From Intoshia linei (lineage: Eukaryota; Animalia; Orthonectida): a DNA stretch of 64,000 nucleotides. Position 1 is the stretch's first letter. Every line of letters begins with the position of its first letter. Location of the stretch: contig LWCA01000044.1 in the NCBI GenBank assembly GCA_001642005.1, forward strand, positions 3,858 through 67,857, written 5' to 3'. This document shows, one piece after another, positions 22,618 through 62,251 of this stretch. Under the pieces are notes generated by a model, which searched no databases, had not been told where the DNA came from, and saw nothing but the letters and a program-made list of their open reading frames with translations. Both the position numbers and the translations under genes were made by a program.

Positions 22618-25600
22618 ATGTATTCAATTGAAGAAGAAGAATATGATTTGTTATCAGATTCCAAGTATAGAATGTACACCAGTTACATTGATAAGGCATT
22701 AAAAAATTTTGAATATAGTAGTGAATGGGCAGATTTGATTTCCGCCATTTCTAAAATAAAAAAGGTAATTTTTTCAATTAATTTATTGAATTTGGTGTAC
22801 ATATTAATTTAATATAGAATTACTTTAAACCCCTTATTTTTTAAGGAAATTATATAAAAATTCTGTATTTTTCATGTTTATTTAATTTTACTTCATTTAA
22901 TGTTTTCATCAATTATTCTAACGTCGTACCATAAATTTTTAACTATTTGTACAAATAGATACAATTCCTGAATTGAATGCCAATTTTGAATATTCTATCA
23001 ATTTTTACTTAAAATATTGTTTTACTAATTTTTAATTTTCACTTTTTTTATAAAGTAGTTTAGCTAAAAATGTATGTCTGTTTGAGTATTTTTGTTTGTT
23101 ACTATTTATTTAAAAAATTAAGTGGAGTAGAGTTTTAAAAATACCAATTTCTAATACAGTTTTTTAAATGTGAAATTTTATTTTCAGAAATTGAGTTTTT
23201 CCGGGTCAAAACACCAAGTATCCTTATTTTAAAATCAAACACGTCCTAAAATTAAAAAAATATTTTTTTATTGAAAATCAATTTAAAAATTTGATTTTAA
23301 GTAGCCAATTTAAAGCATAAAAAAGAAAAAATTTCAAATTTGCCATTATTTTAATTAAACATTAGTTTAAATAAAATCCCGTTGACGGGAATTAGAATGT
23401 TCACTAGGTGAGGGTTGTATTGGATGACATTTTGAGAAAAATATATTTTGAACATTAATAAATTGATTACATCTATTAAATTATGATACTTGAATGGCTA
23501 AGTTACTTTTTTTATTTAAAAAAAAAATGATGCAATAATTGTATTTTGTGATGAAAATGAAAATTATTTTTTTCGAAAATAATATTTAAAAAGACTAATT
23601 ATAAATGAAATAGATTATCGCATCATATGGTCAATATTCTGAAAGTATTCCAAAGTTGTCTATTATAGCAAAAAGATTAGGCCAATGTTTGCATCCAGGT
23701 CTACCTAGTGGTGTGCACCTGAAATGTTTGGAAACTTATGAACTAATTTTTTCTCAAATAAAGCCAGAAATTTTGTCTGAAAATTTATTTATTTTTGCTT
23801 CTGGATTATTCCCAGTAATGTCATATGCAGCACTAAATGTAAAAAGTTATTTATTGGGTATTTATGAAAGATATTTTCTTAATTTGCAGAAATCATTACA
23901 ACAAGCATTCCCAGGATTGTTGGTAGGATTATTGGGAGGATTGGAAGAAGGTTCTCAACATAATAAAAGAGTATTGGAATTAATTGAAAAATTTTGTAAT
24001 TGTGTTGGAAAGAGATTTTTTTATGATAAACTCTGGTTGTGTGTTTCAAACAATGCATCTATTCGCTATAATGCCCTTCTATACGTTTTGGCGCATTACA
24101 ATCGGCGATTGTCGATGGATGATCAAATTGATATTATGGGTTATTATATGCATAATTTTGTTTCTTCCATTTGTTATTGTTTTAGTGATTCAAATATACT
24201 GGCTCAACGAAATGCTATTGAATTTGTGATGAATGCAATACCAATCCATTCTCATATATTACTTCATTCTGATATGACTAAACTTATGGCGTCAGCTATT
24301 AAAATTCTCTTGCGAAGAGATATTTCCCTCAACAGACGAATTTTTTCCTGGTTTCTAGCAAATAGTAGATCTGAAAAAACTTCGGATCAAACAAACTATT
24401 TTGTTCACAATAGTCGTGATATGTTGGTTGATGCTTTAACAGAACACATGCATTCTTGTTATACTTTATTTGATTTAATATACGAACGAAATTTGGGTGT
24501 AGATGAATTTAAAAAAATTGAAAATCAAAATGATTTTAATAATTCTATTTTAAAATGTGTTCAACTTGATCCAAAAATGATTGATAAAACTTTGGTAGCT
24601 TTTAGAATTTTGTCAGTTCTCATTAATAATACCATTATTAAAGATAATATTATGCATTTTATGTTTTTACGACTTTTAGAATTTACATTTGATTGGGTTT
24701 ATTTGAATTCTTTATTTCATATTGATTCTCGTTGTTTAACTTTTAACAAATTATATTACAAACACAAGTACATATCAGTAGAAACTACCCATAGCGGTGA
24801 TTGGAATTCTTCTAACGATAGTTTAGAGTTGAATTATAAAGAAAACATTTTAAGTGAACATTACAAGAATGGGCGGAAATATATATCATTCAACAAAAAT
24901 TTTCAGGAATTGATTGATGAGGATGGTAGATTGAAAAGTAATTTAAATATGACTCTTGTCTGTTTATATTGTGATGTGTGGTCAATAGATGAATATAAAT
25001 ATGAATTTGAGAGGAAGGATCTTAATGGCCTTATTAGAACAAAAAAATATAAAACATTTGATGAATTCTTGATAAAATCAAATGATGTTTCAAAAGTTTT
25101 AATCAACAATTTTAAATTAATTCTAACAAGTGTACAACCAAAATCCATGATTGATATCTTAATTAATCGATTTAATATTATCATGGAAGGTTTAAATAGT
25201 TGTATAGTAAGTGATGATGAAATGTCTTTTACAAGTTCAAATACTATAAATTCATTCTCTGTCCAACATTGTGATGATAAAGAATTGGTCAGTTATTTGC
25301 AATTAAATAGATATTGCAATGCAATTCGTTTTTTGATTAGAATGGTCATCCAAGAAAATGAGTCAAATATTTCAGACAATTTATTATGTTATTATATGAA
25401 ACATACATTGGTTATGGCTAATAAATGTATAGATAAACTTGTGGTCACTAATATTGTCAACTTGAATTTTTTGTGGATTGCAATATTGCAAAAGATTGAT
25501 TGTAAAATGGATGATTGTAATATAACATCATCTTCAAGTCTCATGCAATTTAGAAACTTGTATATAAAATTTGCTAGAAATGTATTGTCAAGTATTTTAA

Positions 25601-28600
25601 AAGTGGATGCTAATAAAACGAGAACTATTACACAACTGATTAATCAATTTACGGGTACATGCTATTCTGGTGAATATATAAATGATCCAGTAACTTATGA
25701 TGTACGAATGGTTTTGGGAACAATTACGACTCTTTTGTTTGACGTTATTTTTAGGTTTTTTAATGATGATACTTATATAAATAACGATGATGAAAAAGGC
25801 GAAATTATTGTACAAGAGATTGCAAAATTGTGGACGTTATTTTTAACGGTTTCTATTGTACACACTAATCCAATTGTATACATATGGTCCATTGAAACGT
25901 TACTAGATTTTGGTAAATTTTTATATAATGAAAGACGAGACAAATGTTTACCGGAAAAAATAATTACTTTAATTAAAGATGAATTTGATGTAATTTTTGA
26001 TACAAATTATTTTTCTACAATTCTAAAAAGATTGTGGGATTTACTTGGCAATACAAATGATGTAAATATTGTTCTAACGATTTATAACGTCGATTCAATC
26101 AATAATTTTAAATTGATGGATACAATAATTCTAAATCATCTGAAATCTGAATTATTTGAAGATCGTATACAAGCTTGCCAAATCTTTGTTAATTTTTGGA
26201 ATATATTTTTACAAATTTCTGAATATAATGAAAATCTCAATATAATTTTTATTACGCAAAGTATACAGTATATGGTCAATATTTTATCTGATGTAGATGA
26301 TGTTTGTTTCAGTGTTGTAGAAAGCTGGGTTTTAGAATGTTTTAGAGAAAATAAAATTTCTTTTATTATTGACAATTTGTTGTTGGTTTTATTGAATGAT
26401 TCTACGAAACGGTATTCTATTTTTTGTGAAGAGGGAAGTGAGCAATTTAAAAAGTGTTTTTTGGTTGATGTTACGAAATCACACTTAGAAAATAAGTCAA
26501 AATGTCAGAATGTTGAAAAACCTTTTAATAAAGATGATAATGAAATGGAAAAAAATCCCATAGAGTCAAAAATTGATACCCCTATAATAAATACCCCATT
26601 GGCGGAACCTGAAAATGAAACATCACCTGATAATATTGTAGATATGTTTGAATTTAAAACATTTGATGCGTATTTACAAAATATTAACTCAATTGATTCA
26701 GGATTTAGTGAAATGTTTTTCTCTGCTCCAATTAAAAAACGATATTTAAGTTACTTGAATCTTGATAGAGTTGCATGCATGTATAATCATTTACTTTTCT
26801 ATTATAAAACTCCTGAATTACAAAATTTATCAAAGTCTTTAAAATGCTTGGAATCTTTCTTTGATTTGGATGCTATTTTGATTGTCAACAAATTCGCTAC
26901 ATGCCCTTTTTTTGATTTAAGTGAAGGATCCACAAAAGTATTATGCCCAATTCTTGAATCTATGATTTCTCATAAATGTTCAATAATTCTGTCAATTTTT
27001 AAAGACATTTCGAAATATTCCATTCCTTCATCAAATACCATTGATTCAGATAAAATTACTTCACTTAATAATCACATTTGTTCAAATTTAACAAAATTAA
27101 ATACCCACATGAATTATTTAGACATTTTGTTGCAAACGCTTATCAATTTTCTAAGATCTTTCCCACGTGAAAAAAATTTAAATGGTTTCACCTATGAAAA
27201 TGAACAATTTAAAGTTCGGATATGCAAAATTTTGTTAAAAATTTTTCAAGGAATGTTTACCCTCATTTCAAACAATGACAACTTTTATCCACAATATTAT
27301 TATGATATTTTGACTCGTAATGATACTCAAAAATTACTTATTTCTGTATATGGTTTTTACTTGTTTCAACTCACAAATATATTAAAAAATGATTACAAGT
27401 CTAGTAATTCATGTATTTTAAATTGCAAAACAATATTGAAATATTTGGTTTTCATGTTTAATATTTTTATCAAAATTGAGCATTATTATTTCAACAATAA
27501 TCCTTGTGATGAAGCAAGCTCTGAAAAGAGTGGTGACAGTAAAAAAGATATTTCTGCTGGCGTAGGTGAAAGTTTATCCAGCTATTTGGATTGCCCTAAT
27601 ATGTCTTGTTTGTATGTGATTGTTCCAATTATTACGAGTAAAATATTTGTAGCGTCCCTTTTACGAACGTTTGAATATTTCGAATTATTTTCGTTACAAG
27701 TTTGTATATTGGATACCATTATTGATTGTCTCCCATATTTTAATAAGCAGCTTGGATCATTATGTACAACCTTTTTAGTTTGTATTTTCAAAAATATTAA
27801 CAATCATGTTTCCAAATTGGACGAAAAAAAAATTTGGATTATCTCAATCTTGCTAAAATATGTAAAATCTATTTTTAATTTTTTTATGACTGAAAGTGTG
27901 AAATTTAATGGAAATGATTTTCAAATGAAAAATATTATTTCTTATAAAAACTATATTACTAAATTCAACATATTAAAATGTAAAGAAACTAAAAAAGTAC
28001 ACATTATTAATGCAAGGAAGCAAGTTTTCAAAATTTTACCATCAATTATATTTTCTTTGGTCAATTTATGGAATATTTACAATACAAATTTGTTTAAAGA
28101 AATTCAAAGTATTTATATGGATTATGATTTTTTTATATTTATTGTTTTGATCAAAGGATCAGGAAAACTTTTTACATTGGATGACTAAATATTTTATATT
28201 GTGGTTTAAAGTCTTTGTACGTAAATAATAGTTAAATAATTACATTCGGATAAATCATTTGTTTTTGGTACGTGGATCCATTAGGATTTATATAATGAAA
28301 ATTTACCATTTTTTTAATTTATTAGACAATGTGTATATAATCTTAAAAATAAAGTAAAAACAGTACAATCTTAAAAATTATTATAAATAGCTTAAATTTT
28401 AGAAAAAATAAAATTTAAATAAAAAGCTTTCGATGAATAAAAAAGTATCAATGTTGTATTAATAATTAATGGCATGAGCACTTTAGAAACATATTTCAGA
28501 TGAATTTTATTAATATTGAAAAAGATTGTAATAAATATAAAAATAATAATGACAAAGTGGTACTTTTATTAATTCGTTGTAGTTTAAATTTTAAATGTTT

Positions 28601-31600
28601 TGAAAATGAAAAATTGCGAAGCAATAAAAAAATCCGAAGGAATCAATTATATAGATTTCCATCCATATGTCTTTATTGGAAATGAATAGACATTAAATAC
28701 ACATTTTATTTGGAAATTGTAGGATGATTATTTACTTTTTCATTTTTAAATTTAAATTAAATTAAATTTTAATTCAAAATTTGAAAAATATTGATTGATA
28801 ATATATTAAAATTATTATTATTTTTCACGGGAATGCGTAGATTTTTTAAATTTAAAAATTTGTATTTATATCAAATCGAATAAGCTCTATCAGAATCATC
28901 TTTTTTTTAATTGTACGACCGTTAATTATTTCAAAGTTTTGTTTTAATAAAATAGTTTCGAAGTAAAAAAATTAATATTAAAGTGTTTTTTTGACGATGA
29001 AGGCGACACTTAATCAGATTGAAATTTTTTTGTGTGTTAACTGGATATAACTGTATAATTCATTTTTTTTGAATTCTAGGGTTGTTTTCATTTTTAAAAA
29101 AAAGAGTAATCTGGGTTTTTGACCGTGAAAATTGTCTTTTTATCTGTTACTATTTATGATAATGCTTATGAATTTAAAAACCATGGCAGAATTTATGTTG
29201 TATAAAATTATAAGACTATATTAAATTTTACAGGAAAGGGTAAATTATGGTTTTGGCCGTGAAGATATAAGATTTTGAAATTGAAAATTATCTTAATATT
29301 GATGAATATAAAACTTTTCATTAGAATGTGTAATTTTTATAATTCTAGAACGGGTTTTTAACGTTGAAGGACTCAATTTCTGAAATTGAAATTTGCGATA
29401 AAACAACACTCTGGAAAAACGGTTATAAGAATATGGAATTCTTGGACACAGGACCGTGGAGAGCCAGCATTAGGCCAAATCAGTTGGAAATTTGTAGCCC
29501 AGATAAATTTTTTTTTATAAATAGGGTCCTCTATAGATTGCTTAATCGGTCGTTTATTGCCTAAAAATTAAAAATAACAGTTGCAAATCGCATTAGTCAT
29601 GATAATTTTGACATACTTAAGAAAATTTCCAACAGTACCTATTAATGAATTAAAATATTAGGCCCTCATGATTGTAGACCCGGGTCATATGGACCTAGCT
29701 CCATTGTCGACCATTCTTCTTGGGCGTATGGTTGATAAACACACGAATTTCATCCTCAAGGTATATAATTCATTTTATTTTTGTGTTTTTTATTTGCAGC
29801 ATAGTAGAAAACCTTAACTCTGTTTTGTTTATCAATTTTCTCTGGCCGCATATAGTTTTGCTGGGCGCACCGGTTGAGAAACACTGCTATAATGGGTCCG
29901 AATTATAAAATATCAAAATTAGAAAAACTGCTTATTTTTTCAAGTGGTGAATTTTTGTAGGTTTAGAATTTAAATAAATACATGATTTTATAAACTGCCG
30001 TTTTATGTGGTCACTTTTGACTTGGCATTGTATTTGTAATTATAACTGTATTATTTAGAATGTCAAATTACGAAACGGTCTATTCTTTCTAATATTGGAT
30101 CAATCATAGAAGTAATATTATATCATGATTCAATTACATGCATAACAGCATTTTCTGTTGTATGGGGTGAACTTTCAATTGGAAAAAGAATTAATTCTCC
30201 AATTGAATATATTATTCCTTCAATAACCAAAGAACAGGAAATGATTATTACTTTTCTACAATCGCTGGAATGTTTTCCGTGTAACAAGTTTTTTGTAGCA
30301 ATTAAAGACGGAATTAAAAATCCATTAAAAGGTCTTTATTCTTCAACGACCTCCCATCTCAATAAAACCTATATAAATAAAGTGCAAACACGGAAAACGT
30401 CTTTAGACATTTGTATGCTACGAATGTTTTATTATTATATTTGCAAATTAGACACTGGTTTATTTATTAACCATTGGAGTGTATTATATAAATTTTATAA
30501 AGATTCAAGCAATGATTTGGAAAAGCCTACTTGTATATTTGTATTAATGTATTCATTTGTGGACATATCAGAACGAATGAAAGTAAGTGATTCAAACATG
30601 TATAAAGAACTTCAAGAAATCACCATTAAATTAATAGAAAAAATTAATACAATTATTTCGGCTTTATTAGAAAACACAACTTGGATTAGACGCAGTTTAA
30701 TTGTCAAAAATTCAGTACAAGTTGATTATAATGAATACCCTGAAGATATGAAAAAAATTCCAAAAAATCGTGAAAATTATAGGATGCGATACAGTGTCCA
30801 GGGCATAATGGCTTTAGTTGACTCATTATCTAAGCTTATGGACATTGTCTTTACTAGTGAGGATAAAGAAAAAACTGTTCCAATTTTAACTAGCGTATTA
30901 ACCAATGTGTTTCCGTTTTTGAGAGCAAGGTCTTGCAGCAATATACCTGCTTTCAGAGCTTCTTCAAATCTTTTGAGAAATTTATCAGACTATCAATTTT
31001 CACGCAAAGTTTGGAAACGAGATATTTTTGAACTTTTTAACGACTCATCTTTTTTTCAAGTCGATGAAACTAGTTTTAAAGATTGGGTCATAATAATTGA
31101 TAATTTGATGAGCAATGATACTACTACATTTAGAGAACTTTTGACGCGTCCTCTTTCAAGTCAAAAAGCAGCACTACCTCTTTTTATATCCAGGGAACAA
31201 GAAATTGAACAACGGTGTGCTCACATTAAGCGTATATCTTTTGTTATATATAGTGGAGAAATTGACCAGTACTACAAATACTTGCCAGAAATTCAAGAAA
31301 AAATTACAGAAAATTTAAAATTTGTATCTCCTTTTATATTGAACGAAATTTTCTTTTGTTTCAGAATAATTTTACTTAAATTTTCAAGAAACCTGGTTTC
31401 CATTTGGCCAATTATTATATATGAACTTACAAATGCTTTAAGCATCATGCACCAATTTTTAAGGGCAAAATACGATGACGATGATTCTCTTAGACAGAGA
31501 ACAAATTCTATTATGAAAATTAGTGGAATTGATTTGAACGCAAAAGCCTGGAAGTATGCTTTTTTGGGAGCCGTTAAATTATTGAATTTGTTGATTGATA

Positions 31601-32025
31601 TACCTGTTACCCACCTCCCTCATTTTCAATTTTACAATTGGGCTTTTGTTGATTTGAATCAGCAATATAATGAATCTACGGAGAGTCCAGGTGTAAGTGA
31701 TATAGATTATTTTACTGATGAAACTGTCAATACTAAAGAAAATAAAAAGTATTTTATACCATACACGTTAAAAATTAACCAATTATTACAAAAATCTAAA
31801 AATAATACTAAAGATCTAGTTTCTAAAAAATTAAATTACGCCAAGTTAGTTGAAAGTTTTATACCAAGAGTTTCCATTAAATCTATCGAAGAATTATCAC
31901 CTTTTTTTGAGAATATTTCAGACAGAATTACTAGAATAAAACCAAACGATGAATATCAAATTTACGAAAATATAAACATCTCGACTTATCTCAAACCTCA
32001 TGAATTCTTAGAACCCTTCAATTAA
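22618..32025 (+). CDS. DOP1: Dopey/DOP1 (pad-1) trafficking protein; exons 22618-22764, 23614-~28108, 30059-32025
   Basis: N-terminal Dopey domain ([41 protein letters not shown]) and a conserved C-terminus (VFPFLRARS, IIDNLM, DQYYKYLPEIQE). Splice phases are compatible. Confidence 0.95.
28250..29440 (-). mobile_element. Partial copy of the non-autonomous Helitron family in Dopey intron 2
   Basis: Long blocks align by eye with 60760-62130, e.g. TTATTAGACA...AAAAATAAAGTAAAAA and GAAGGAAT.AATTATATAGATTT. Boundaries approximate. Confidence 0.7.
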
Positions 32026-60570: not shown

Positions 60571-62251
60571 CTAGCTTGGCAGTTTTGTACTACGTACAAA
60601 CAGCACCTAGCTCTGCCGAGGGCACTCTTTTATTATACCAAAAAAATAAATTCACGTTGAAAATCTAACTTAAAAATTCTACTATTAACTATTATCAATC
60701 CTTTGTTTTGTTTTGTTAAAATTTGCGTAAAGAATTTAAAAACAATTATTATTCCATTTTTTTAATTTATTAGACAGAATGTGTGTATAATATTAAAAAT
60801 AAAGTAAAAATAAGTCCAATCCTAAAAATTGTCATAAATAGCATAAATTCCAGAAAAAATAAAATTATAAAAACATTGTCATTTTCAATGTGATGTAATA
60901 TATTCACAGTCCTCGTCACCTATTACAGTACTCTTTAAAACTGTCGTTTTAAATTAGACATTTCTAGTGCCATATGAATGATATAATTTATATCTATCGT
61001 TATAACACAGCACAAATACAACTTCCATTAATCCTCCTGCATTATTTATACCCTTATAAAAATTTGTGGATTGTTTCATTCGTTATTTTAGAATCTAATT
61101 TTATAACGCTAATGTATGTCGAAGACTGTCAGTATCAATTTTAAAACATACTTAAAAATACAATTGTGTATAAATAATTAATTGAATCTTCACTTTATAT
61201 TTATATTTTAGTCGAATTTTACCATTATTGCAAAGGATTGTAATATAAAAATGATTGATGTTAAAAATGTTTCCATACTTTTGGCCTTTTTTTGTGAATG
61301 TTACTTGTCTTTTTACCATTTTATGTTAAATTTGTAACAATTATCATTAAAAAAAATAACGTTTCAGTTAATATAAATTTAATTTTATAAATTCGTTGGT
61401 GTAGTGTTAAAATTTGAAGATTATAAAAAATGTTTGGAAAATGGAAATTAAAAATTGCGAAGGAATGAATTATATAGATTTTCACCCATATGTCTTTGTA
61501 ATGATTGGCAGATAAGAACTTTGATAAGTTCATCCTAAATAAAAAGATGTCCAAATCTCGATTCGAACCTAGCCACGCAGATTACAATCATATGACTATA
61601 ACGACTCCGCCAGGCAGACATCACAAGTCAGTTATATCAAAAGTATATATTCGAATCTCGATTAGTATAATAGGGATATATCACTACAGTCTTCATTGGA
61701 AATGTGTAGACGTACAATACACATTTTTTTTGAAATTGGATCAATATTTATATTTTCAATTTTTGATTTTAATCGAAATATTTGAAAAATATTGGTTGAT
61801 AATATATTAAAAGTATTTTTCACCCGGGAATGCGTAGATTTCTCGTTGAAATTTTGTATTTATATCAACTGGAATAACCTCTATCAGAATAATTTTTTTT
61901 TTTTTAATTTTCAGACCGTTAATTATTTCACATTTTTTGTTTTAATAAAATATTTTGTAAAAAAAATATATATACTAAAATGCTTTTTTGACCGTAAAGT
62001 CATCACTTATTCGGATTGAAATTTTCTGTGTGTGTTAACAGGATACAACTGTACAATTAAAAAAAGAAGGGTAATTGTGGTTTTGGCCATGAAGATGTGA
62101 AATTGGGAGGTTGAAATATATCTTAATATACGTCCCGAAAAAAACTGTAATTGAAATGTAATCTTTAAAAAATTCTAAGATGGGTAGTTATTTAAATAAA
62201 TCTGAACACACACACAAACAAAAATAGCGTCGCATTTTATATAAGTTAGGA
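60571..62251 (-). mobile_element. Complete non-autonomous Helitron
   Basis: Minus strand begins A|TCCTAACTTATATAAAA...(GT)n and ends with a hairpin (CTGTTTGTAC..GTACAAAACTG) followed by CTAG|T. Matching 3' ends lie at 49383-49433 and 63355-63407, and matching 5' ends near 9920 and 9950. Confidence 0.75.
61497..61688. mobile_element. Solo-LTR-like 192-bp insertion containing a tRNA-like Pol III cassette
   Basis: GTCTT|TGTAATGAT...ATCACTACA|GTCTT. The empty site CATATGTCTTTATTGGAAATG is present in the paralogous Helitron copy near 28665. Confidence 0.8.

Follow-up and report, generated by a model that had tools for sequence, protein, structure and literature searches.

A 192-bp insert in the genome of the orthonectid Intoshia linei belongs to a family of more than 100 copies, which we read, with somewhat better than even confidence, as the solo LTRs of a Helenus-like (TRIMp3) non-autonomous LTR retrotransposon. 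The unit is non-coding and carries in its middle a tRNA-type cassette with A and B boxes. Its LTR nature is likely and not proven, with one two-copy structure among the more than 100 copies. The insert was found in a stretch of 64,000 nucleotides of contig LWCA01000044.1 (positions 3,858 to 67,857), here called the window.

The insert and its empty site

The insert (window 61497-61688) starts TGTAATGAT and ends ATCACTACA, thus having TG..CA termini; the features read in it are collected in Table 1. A preliminary description of this DNA had reported a 192-bp insert with such ends and GTCTT on both sides, and a paralogous repeat copy near 28665 that lacks the insert and has GTCTT once. Both observations are borne out by the sequence, the empty paralogue reading ...CCATATGTCTTTATTGG... 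at this point. Aligned with the majority sequence of its family, the window insert is 93.75% identical and free of gaps. The unit ends pair as a short imperfect inverted repeat (7-8 of 9 bp), and the 5′ terminus is the best-conserved part of the unit, with 2.1% divergence across copies.

Table 1. Features of the insert, its flanks and the empty site (window coordinates; the sense of the unit is the window minus strand)
Feature	Position	Strand	Comment
Left target-site duplication GTCTT	61492-61496	.	Sequence read; single GTCTT in empty paralogue
Right target-site duplication GTCTT	61689-61693	.	Sequence read
192-bp mobile unit, read as a probable Helenus-like TRIM solo LTR	61497-61688	-	
Unit 5′ terminus	61680-61688	-	Sense orientation TGTAGTGAT
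Unit 3′ terminus	61497-61505	-	Sense orientation ...ATCATTACA; family majority ...ATCGTTACA
tRNA-like body (closing stem, D-, anticodon- and T-arm-like segments)	61546-61622	-	Sequence read
A box	61602-61612	-	TGGCGGAGTCG; family majority TGGCAGAGTGG
B box	61559-61569	-	GGTTCGAATCG, also written GGTTCGAATC(G)
T5 run, Pol III terminator-like	61541-61545	-	Directly 3′ of the tRNA-like body
Anticodon-arm-like site, unit positions 97-107	61582-61592	-	Majority TATAATTGTAT; here TATGATTGTAA
Empty target site GTCTT in paralogous host-repeat copy	28669-28673	.	Without insert

The repeat that hosts the insert (window 28300-29100 and 60754-62058) is widespread. Over half of the ~70 loci retrieved contained pieces of a probe of ~800 bp from it, and the same repeat is nested within two copies of the 192-bp unit (L034 and L035). 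A target preference of the unit for the host repeat was rejected, since the repeat occurs in more than half of all fetched loci. The empty copy sits between two long open frames (window 23656-32025) that match DOP1/Dopey domains (Dopey_N, TPR_DOP1 and DOP1_C), and is presumably intronic.

Copies, duplications and age

The 192-bp query was searched against the 41.6-Mb assembly (3520 contigs) and gave 144 first-look candidates genome-wide, of which the best 40 scored 87-100% identity, nearly all of them at full length. The whole-genome search scores the best candidates only, and the copy inventory is a lower bound. A majority-rule sequence of the unit served as search probe only. Pattern scans allowing up to three mismatches matched the 5′ end 83 times, the middle from B box to T5 run 65 times and the 3′ end 65 times; reversed-pattern controls for these three patterns gave 0 matches in the genome.

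When 30 copies were aligned together with their flanks, the ends proved sharp and constant (TGTAGTGATATATCGC... and ...CCAATCGTTACA, read in the direction of the tRNA relic). A perfect 5-bp duplication borders 19 of 32 independent full copies, and at least four of the five positions agree in 24 of the 32, while the duplication extends to 6 bp in none (0 of 32). In the control, where flanks were paired across different copies, 4 of 992 match. The duplicated sites follow no consensus and have a G+C content of 42%, as compared with 25.6% for the window. An A-rich or simple-repeat tail is absent from the unit. These data show repeated amplification of the 192-bp unit, inserted by an enzyme that cuts the target with a 5-bp stagger and recognises the TG..CA ends.

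Sampled copies differ on average by 4.6% from the majority sequence and by 7% from one another (93% pairwise identity); the family looks old and inactive. Almost all copies are solo units. The preliminary description had named three outcomes that would speak against its proposal: a single-copy element, variable ends without duplications, or a tRNA cassette confined to one LTR. Instead, the genome searches gave more than 100 copies, their ends are constant with 5-bp duplications of differing sequence, and the cassette is present in every aligned full copy, so the unit is not a SINE that landed in one LTR.

Some copies have a further history. A unit insertion with the duplication AGTGT lies within a repeat starting TAGGGTGTCCAC (L043:4583-5026; also L042, L044, L045, L046 and L051). 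This repeat was later amplified with the unit as a passenger, at no fewer than six loci, and the passenger subfamily has an altered B-box region, AGTTCGGATCC. Among five nested insertions into the unit, three (L034, L035 and L038) hit one 16-bp AT-rich stretch at unit positions 91-106, which lie between the A and B boxes.

The tRNA-like cassette

The cassette occupies positions 70-148 of the 192, with the tRNA-like part at 70-143 and the T5 run at 144-148. The A box, B box, closing stem and T5 run that had been described on the minus strand of the insert can all be read there. The A box of the window departs once from TRGCNNAGTGG and that of the family majority, TGGCAGAGTGG, matches it perfectly. 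A gapped pattern of A box plus B box has one match in the window and occurred in 0 of 100 shuffles, and the two boxes stand at canonical spacing in every aligned full copy. Divergence of the T5 run across copies is 2.5%.

The closing stem, GATGTCTG/TGGACATC (61622-61615 and 61553-61546, minus strand), is 3 nt off the canonical tRNA register relative to the boxes. With the register fixed by the boxes, 6 of 7 acceptor pairs form in the family majority, and all arm segments have canonical tRNA length; most of the pairing in the D, anticodon and T stems is lost.

As a tRNA gene, the cassette is called by neither of the programs used. The Rfam tRNA model (RF00005) gave no match at E up to 10 on stretches of 241 and 601 bp containing the insert, ARAGORN found no tRNA in the window or in 44 copy-bearing loci, and none of the genome's 61 Rfam tRNA matches is located at a unit copy. 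The minimum-energy fold of a family copy close to the majority is a long hairpin with no cloverleaf (z -1.9). A variant copy with a possibly better T arm (L032) was considered and set aside as just a variant. No 5S match appeared in the Rfam scans of the insert stretches, and the boxes are of tRNA type. Across copies, conservation of the A and B boxes does not exceed that of the remaining unit, as expected of dead copies. The cassette is a decayed tRNA derivative that retains only promoter-like boxes.

Search for two-LTR structures

Locus L014 is the sole two-copy structure with one shared duplication among the more than 100 copies. It consists of a 94-bp internally deleted copy, a spacer of 146 bp and a full 192-bp copy, the two copies being co-oriented; the deletion in the former lies between two AATCGAGATT direct repeats. 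TCGCG flanks the composite on both sides, for which the chance expectation is ~1 in 1000, and neither copy has a duplication of its own. A polypurine tract, GATGGAGA, abuts the TG of the 3′ copy.

The last 105 bp of the spacer, together with the unit start, recur at two other loci, 95% identical at L070 and as a degenerate copy at L071, and a purine tract precedes the unit at both (GATAGAGA and GATAAAGA, respectively). Within these 105 bp, a stretch of 80 nt shows weak similarity to unit positions 121-192 (z ~3.5 against shuffles). It closes with TCGTTACA, the sequence in which the unit itself ends on its 3′ side; next come A, TGGTTCATTG, TTTTGT and the purine tract. Judged by its letters, the order TCGTTACA, A, TGGTTCATTG, purine tract is the canonical geometry of LTR end, primer-binding site and purine tract. 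With two copies inside one duplication and a purine tract before the 3′ copy, L014 looks like a TRIM. The spacer has 3 genome matches in all and was therefore rejected as a multi-copy internal region; the junction patterns of L014 are unique in the genome.

Two other kinds of candidate were tried and rejected. Combining the three pattern scans to look for paired LTRs around a coding region yielded a single co-oriented pair, 12 kb apart on contig C2705; one member is truncated and the other is a solo copy bordered by a TTGTA duplication that belongs to it alone. Spans of 376-1870 bp running from a 5′ end to a 3′ end (L034-L038) are single copies split by nested insertions.

The fragment at L070 (L070:541-792) measures 252 bp and comprises the 3′ part of the spacer plus unit positions 5-152, stopping at the T run. 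The frame of a decayed reverse transcriptase (YLDD motif, RVT_1), which runs on the opposite strand, is broken by this fragment, and no duplication borders it. It may be a captured cDNA of element RNA, in which case its boundaries would hint, weakly, at RNA ends near unit positions 121 and 152.

Candidate primer sites

Paired LTRs with a primer site and a purine tract had been proposed as something to look for. L014 supplies one candidate pair with a purine tract, and no TGG-type primer site stands directly beside its 5′ copy. What stands there is a different candidate: the 11 nt with which the spacer begins are exactly complementary to unit positions 97-107 (shuffle p 0.0015, at this single locus), which fall in the anticodon-arm-like region. 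The TGG-type candidate, TGGTTCATTG, lies farther on in the spacer, after the LTR-end-like TCGTTACA. Scanning for the 11-mer target plus NC gave no overlap with a tRNA gene among the first 100 of 147 matches.

The element could thus prime its own reverse transcription, the 11 nt past the 5′ LTR pairing with the anticodon-arm-like relic of the same LTR; we consider this quite unlikely. The primer would be an LTR-encoded Pol III transcript cut in the anticodon loop, or element RNA folded back on itself. The self-primer of Tf1 has a length of 11 nt. The 11 nt of L014 resemble Tf1 self-priming, and the anticodon-region priming of copia, Ty5 and fungal Helenus, in being complementary to the anticodon-arm-like region of the element's own LTR; they differ from these in being a candidate at a single locus, in that the complementary site is internal to the LTR, and in that a canonical TGG-type candidate also lies in the spacer. 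Anticodon-loop priming has been described for Copia-type elements and for fungal Helenus (PMC10886601). The earlier suggestion that the tRNA-like part is the element's own primer source therefore keeps one 11-nt complementarity, in L014 only, and meets a rival TGG-type site nearby. Self-priming, if true, would supply the role of the tRNA relic for which Kojima looked in Helenus without finding it.

LTR retrotransposons of the genome

Integrase-domain (rve) matches number at least 221 candidates genome-wide. The LTR elements of the genome are overwhelmingly not Copia, since Copia-type reverse transcriptase (PF07727) matches only ~five loci. No similarity to the unit was found at 12 integrase loci, nor was there an autonomous partner with sequence in common with unit or spacer. 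A unit copy 620 bp downstream of an integrase fragment on contig C2751 was rejected as its LTR, having its own GACAA duplication.

A 179-bp element is nested in one unit copy (L038:1070-1248), with the duplication TAGTC or AGTC, and has 19 genome matches. Three contigs (C491, C1612 and C935) have it 300-450 bp downstream of an rve match, consistently oriented. The TGTAA.. element has the termini (T)GTAATAATAT...CCTTACA, which are similar to those of the unit, TGTAGTGATAT...CGTTACA; beyond the termini the two elements show no similarity. The 179-bp element is a true short LTR and may be related to the element that mobilises the unit; linked as it is to rve, it tells us that short LTRs of such size exist in this genome.

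Weighing the explanations

Under the reading that we favour, the element would have been copied via RNA, with reverse transcriptase and integrase supplied in trans by an autonomous Gypsy-type LTR retrotransposon of the genome, and LTR-LTR recombination would have left the solo LTRs. The tRNA relic would act as a promoter, or as a module that binds TFIIIC, and not as a working tRNA. Because the T5 run would stop Pol III inside the element, Pol III alone cannot make a full-length template, and full-length RNA probably arises via Pol II or read-through. The idea of an LTR/TRIM family that captured a tRNA gene is accordingly likely in its first half, given the LTR-type ends, the multiple copies and the L014 composite; as to its second half, the cassette is a promoter-like relic in which no model finds a tRNA gene. 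Several observations count against solo LTRs. The sole two-copy structure has a deleted 5′ copy and no adjoining TGG-type primer site, an autonomous partner sharing sequence with the unit or spacer is missing, and published animal Helenus duplications are 4 bp where here they are 5 bp.

The main competitor, to which we give a small though appreciable share of belief, is that the 192 bp are a complete MITE-like DNA transposon whose short TGTAR termini are recognised by an integrase-related DDE transposase (Ginger2/TDD-like or similar), with the tRNA relic as captured cargo. Almost all copies do stand alone, their ends are 9-bp imperfect inverted repeats of the TGTNR type, and TGTNR termini are found in Ginger elements and 5-bp duplications in TDD-4 and TDD-5 (PMC2836005). 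The at least 221 integrase-domain matches may include Ginger types beside those of retrotransposons. A 160-bp derivative also fits: it consists of unit positions 1 to ~134 plus an inverted 5′ terminus, so that the same terminus stands inverted at both ends, and neither the T5 run nor the normal 3′ end is present. It occurs at two unrelated loci (L039:1036-1195 and L040:1043-1202), one of them with a perfect TTCTT duplication, and its spread is more easily explained by DNA-level, cut-and-paste mobilisation that needs the termini only. Since its junction sits in a near-palindrome, AATCNNGATT, the derivative could have arisen twice. Even the L014 composite could be two neighbouring copies moved by their outer ends. 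Yet these two copies are direct, not inverted; the purine tract abuts the 3′ copy, the spacer has an LTR-end-like motif followed by a TGG site, and spacer sequence accompanies the unit at three loci. The inverted repeats of Ginger elements measure 40-270 bp against 7-8 of 9 bp here, and metazoan Ginger2 makes 4-bp duplications at RTATAY, whereas the sites here are 42% G+C with no consensus (PMC2836005). Nor did a search, which was not exhaustive, find a longer element with the unit's termini among the more than 100 pattern matches.

Two further readings concern the cassette. That the box likeness is not of tRNA origin at all, the unit being an ordinary short LTR or MITE with chance box-like strings, would agree with the lack of a tRNA model match at E up to 10 on either stretch (241 or 601 bp), with the hairpin fold (z -1.9) and with boxes conserved no better than the remaining unit. 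We nonetheless think it very unlikely: the A box matches at 11 of 11 positions and the B box at 10 of 11, every arm segment has canonical tRNA length, 6 of 7 acceptor pairs are in register, the T5 run begins 3 nt past the discriminator position, and the joint A/B-box pattern turned up in 0 of 100 shuffles. Conversely, the whole unit could be a tRNA-derived SINE with an internal Pol III promoter, copied by a LINE via target-primed reverse transcription, as its canonically spaced boxes, the T5 run after them and its SINE-like size might suggest. This reading is already contradicted by the anatomy of the unit and has hardly any probability left. The tRNA-like part begins at position 70 of 192, away from the 5′ end, and the T5 run at 144-148 would stop a Pol III transcript 44 nt short of the element end; the unit lacks an A-rich or simple-repeat tail, and its duplication has a constant length of 5 bp, next to TG..CA ends.

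Comparison with known elements

Helenus elements (Kojima 2024) are TRIMs with tRNA-derived sequence in their LTRs, known from fungi, one plant and six animal phyla (PMC10886601). They are recognised by an A box TRGCY..YGG and a B box GGTTC inside the LTR; the boxes are conserved, and the relic is mostly no functional tRNA (PMC10886601). Published lengths range from 311 to 1263 bp, and some families survive only as solo LTRs and fragments (PMC10886601). Animal Helenus have 4-bp duplications and Gypsy-type primer sites for tRNA 3′ ends, while the duplications of fungal and plant Helenus are 5 bp (PMC10886601). Kojima saw no complementarity between the tRNA-like part of Helenus LTRs and the primer site (PMC10886601).

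The family described here shares with Helenus a short non-coding unit, a decayed and non-functional tRNA relic in the putative LTR that keeps its A and B boxes, TG..CA ends with a duplication (5 bp) inside the 4-5-bp range, survival nearly only as solo units and, in L014, a polypurine tract just upstream of the 3′ LTR. An intact element would have been ~530 bp long, inside the published range. It differs from animal Helenus in its 5-bp duplication and in the absence of a TGG site abutting the 5′ copy, and from Helenus in general in that a single two-LTR copy is found here and that this copy, L014, shows an 11-nt complementarity to the LTR.

Other known elements are less close. Cassandra, a TRIM of plants whose LTRs contain a 5S rRNA unit (PMC10886601), likewise has the Pol III promoter and terminator of a small-RNA gene in a non-autonomous LTR element, but the relic here is of tRNA rather than 5S type and the host is an animal. 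SINE2 elements are similar in size (~200 bp) and in having a decayed tRNA head that contains A and B boxes, but here the head is internal, the tail is missing, the duplication is fixed at 5 bp beside TG..CA ends and the terminator falls within the element. Ginger2/TDD elements have TGTNR termini, 5-bp duplications in TDD-4 and TDD-5, and inverted repeats of 50-180 bp (PMC2836005); our unit matches them in terminus type and duplication length and departs from them in its inverted repeat of ~9 bp and in the direct-repeat composite with a purine tract.

The preliminary description had seen in the insert a possible tRNA analogue of Cassandra. As a novelty this is superseded: such elements were published as Helenus in 2024, and Helenus, Cassandra and Ajax are together named TRIMp3 (PMC10886601). 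Our literature search found no later paper extending Helenus.

Significance

The unit is most likely a new example of the Helenus kind and involves no new principle. Since the capture of small-RNA promoters in LTRs was already established, the gain is incremental. In annotation, the more than 100 copies should be treated as retroelement relics and masked, not labelled as SINEs or tRNA pseudogenes. To a small, AT-rich animal genome the finding adds a family of LTR type that bears the relic of a Pol III promoter, and it indicates that such families can persist almost wholly as solo units. Confirmation of the 5-bp duplication and of the unusual arrangement of primer sites would extend what has been published on animal Helenus.
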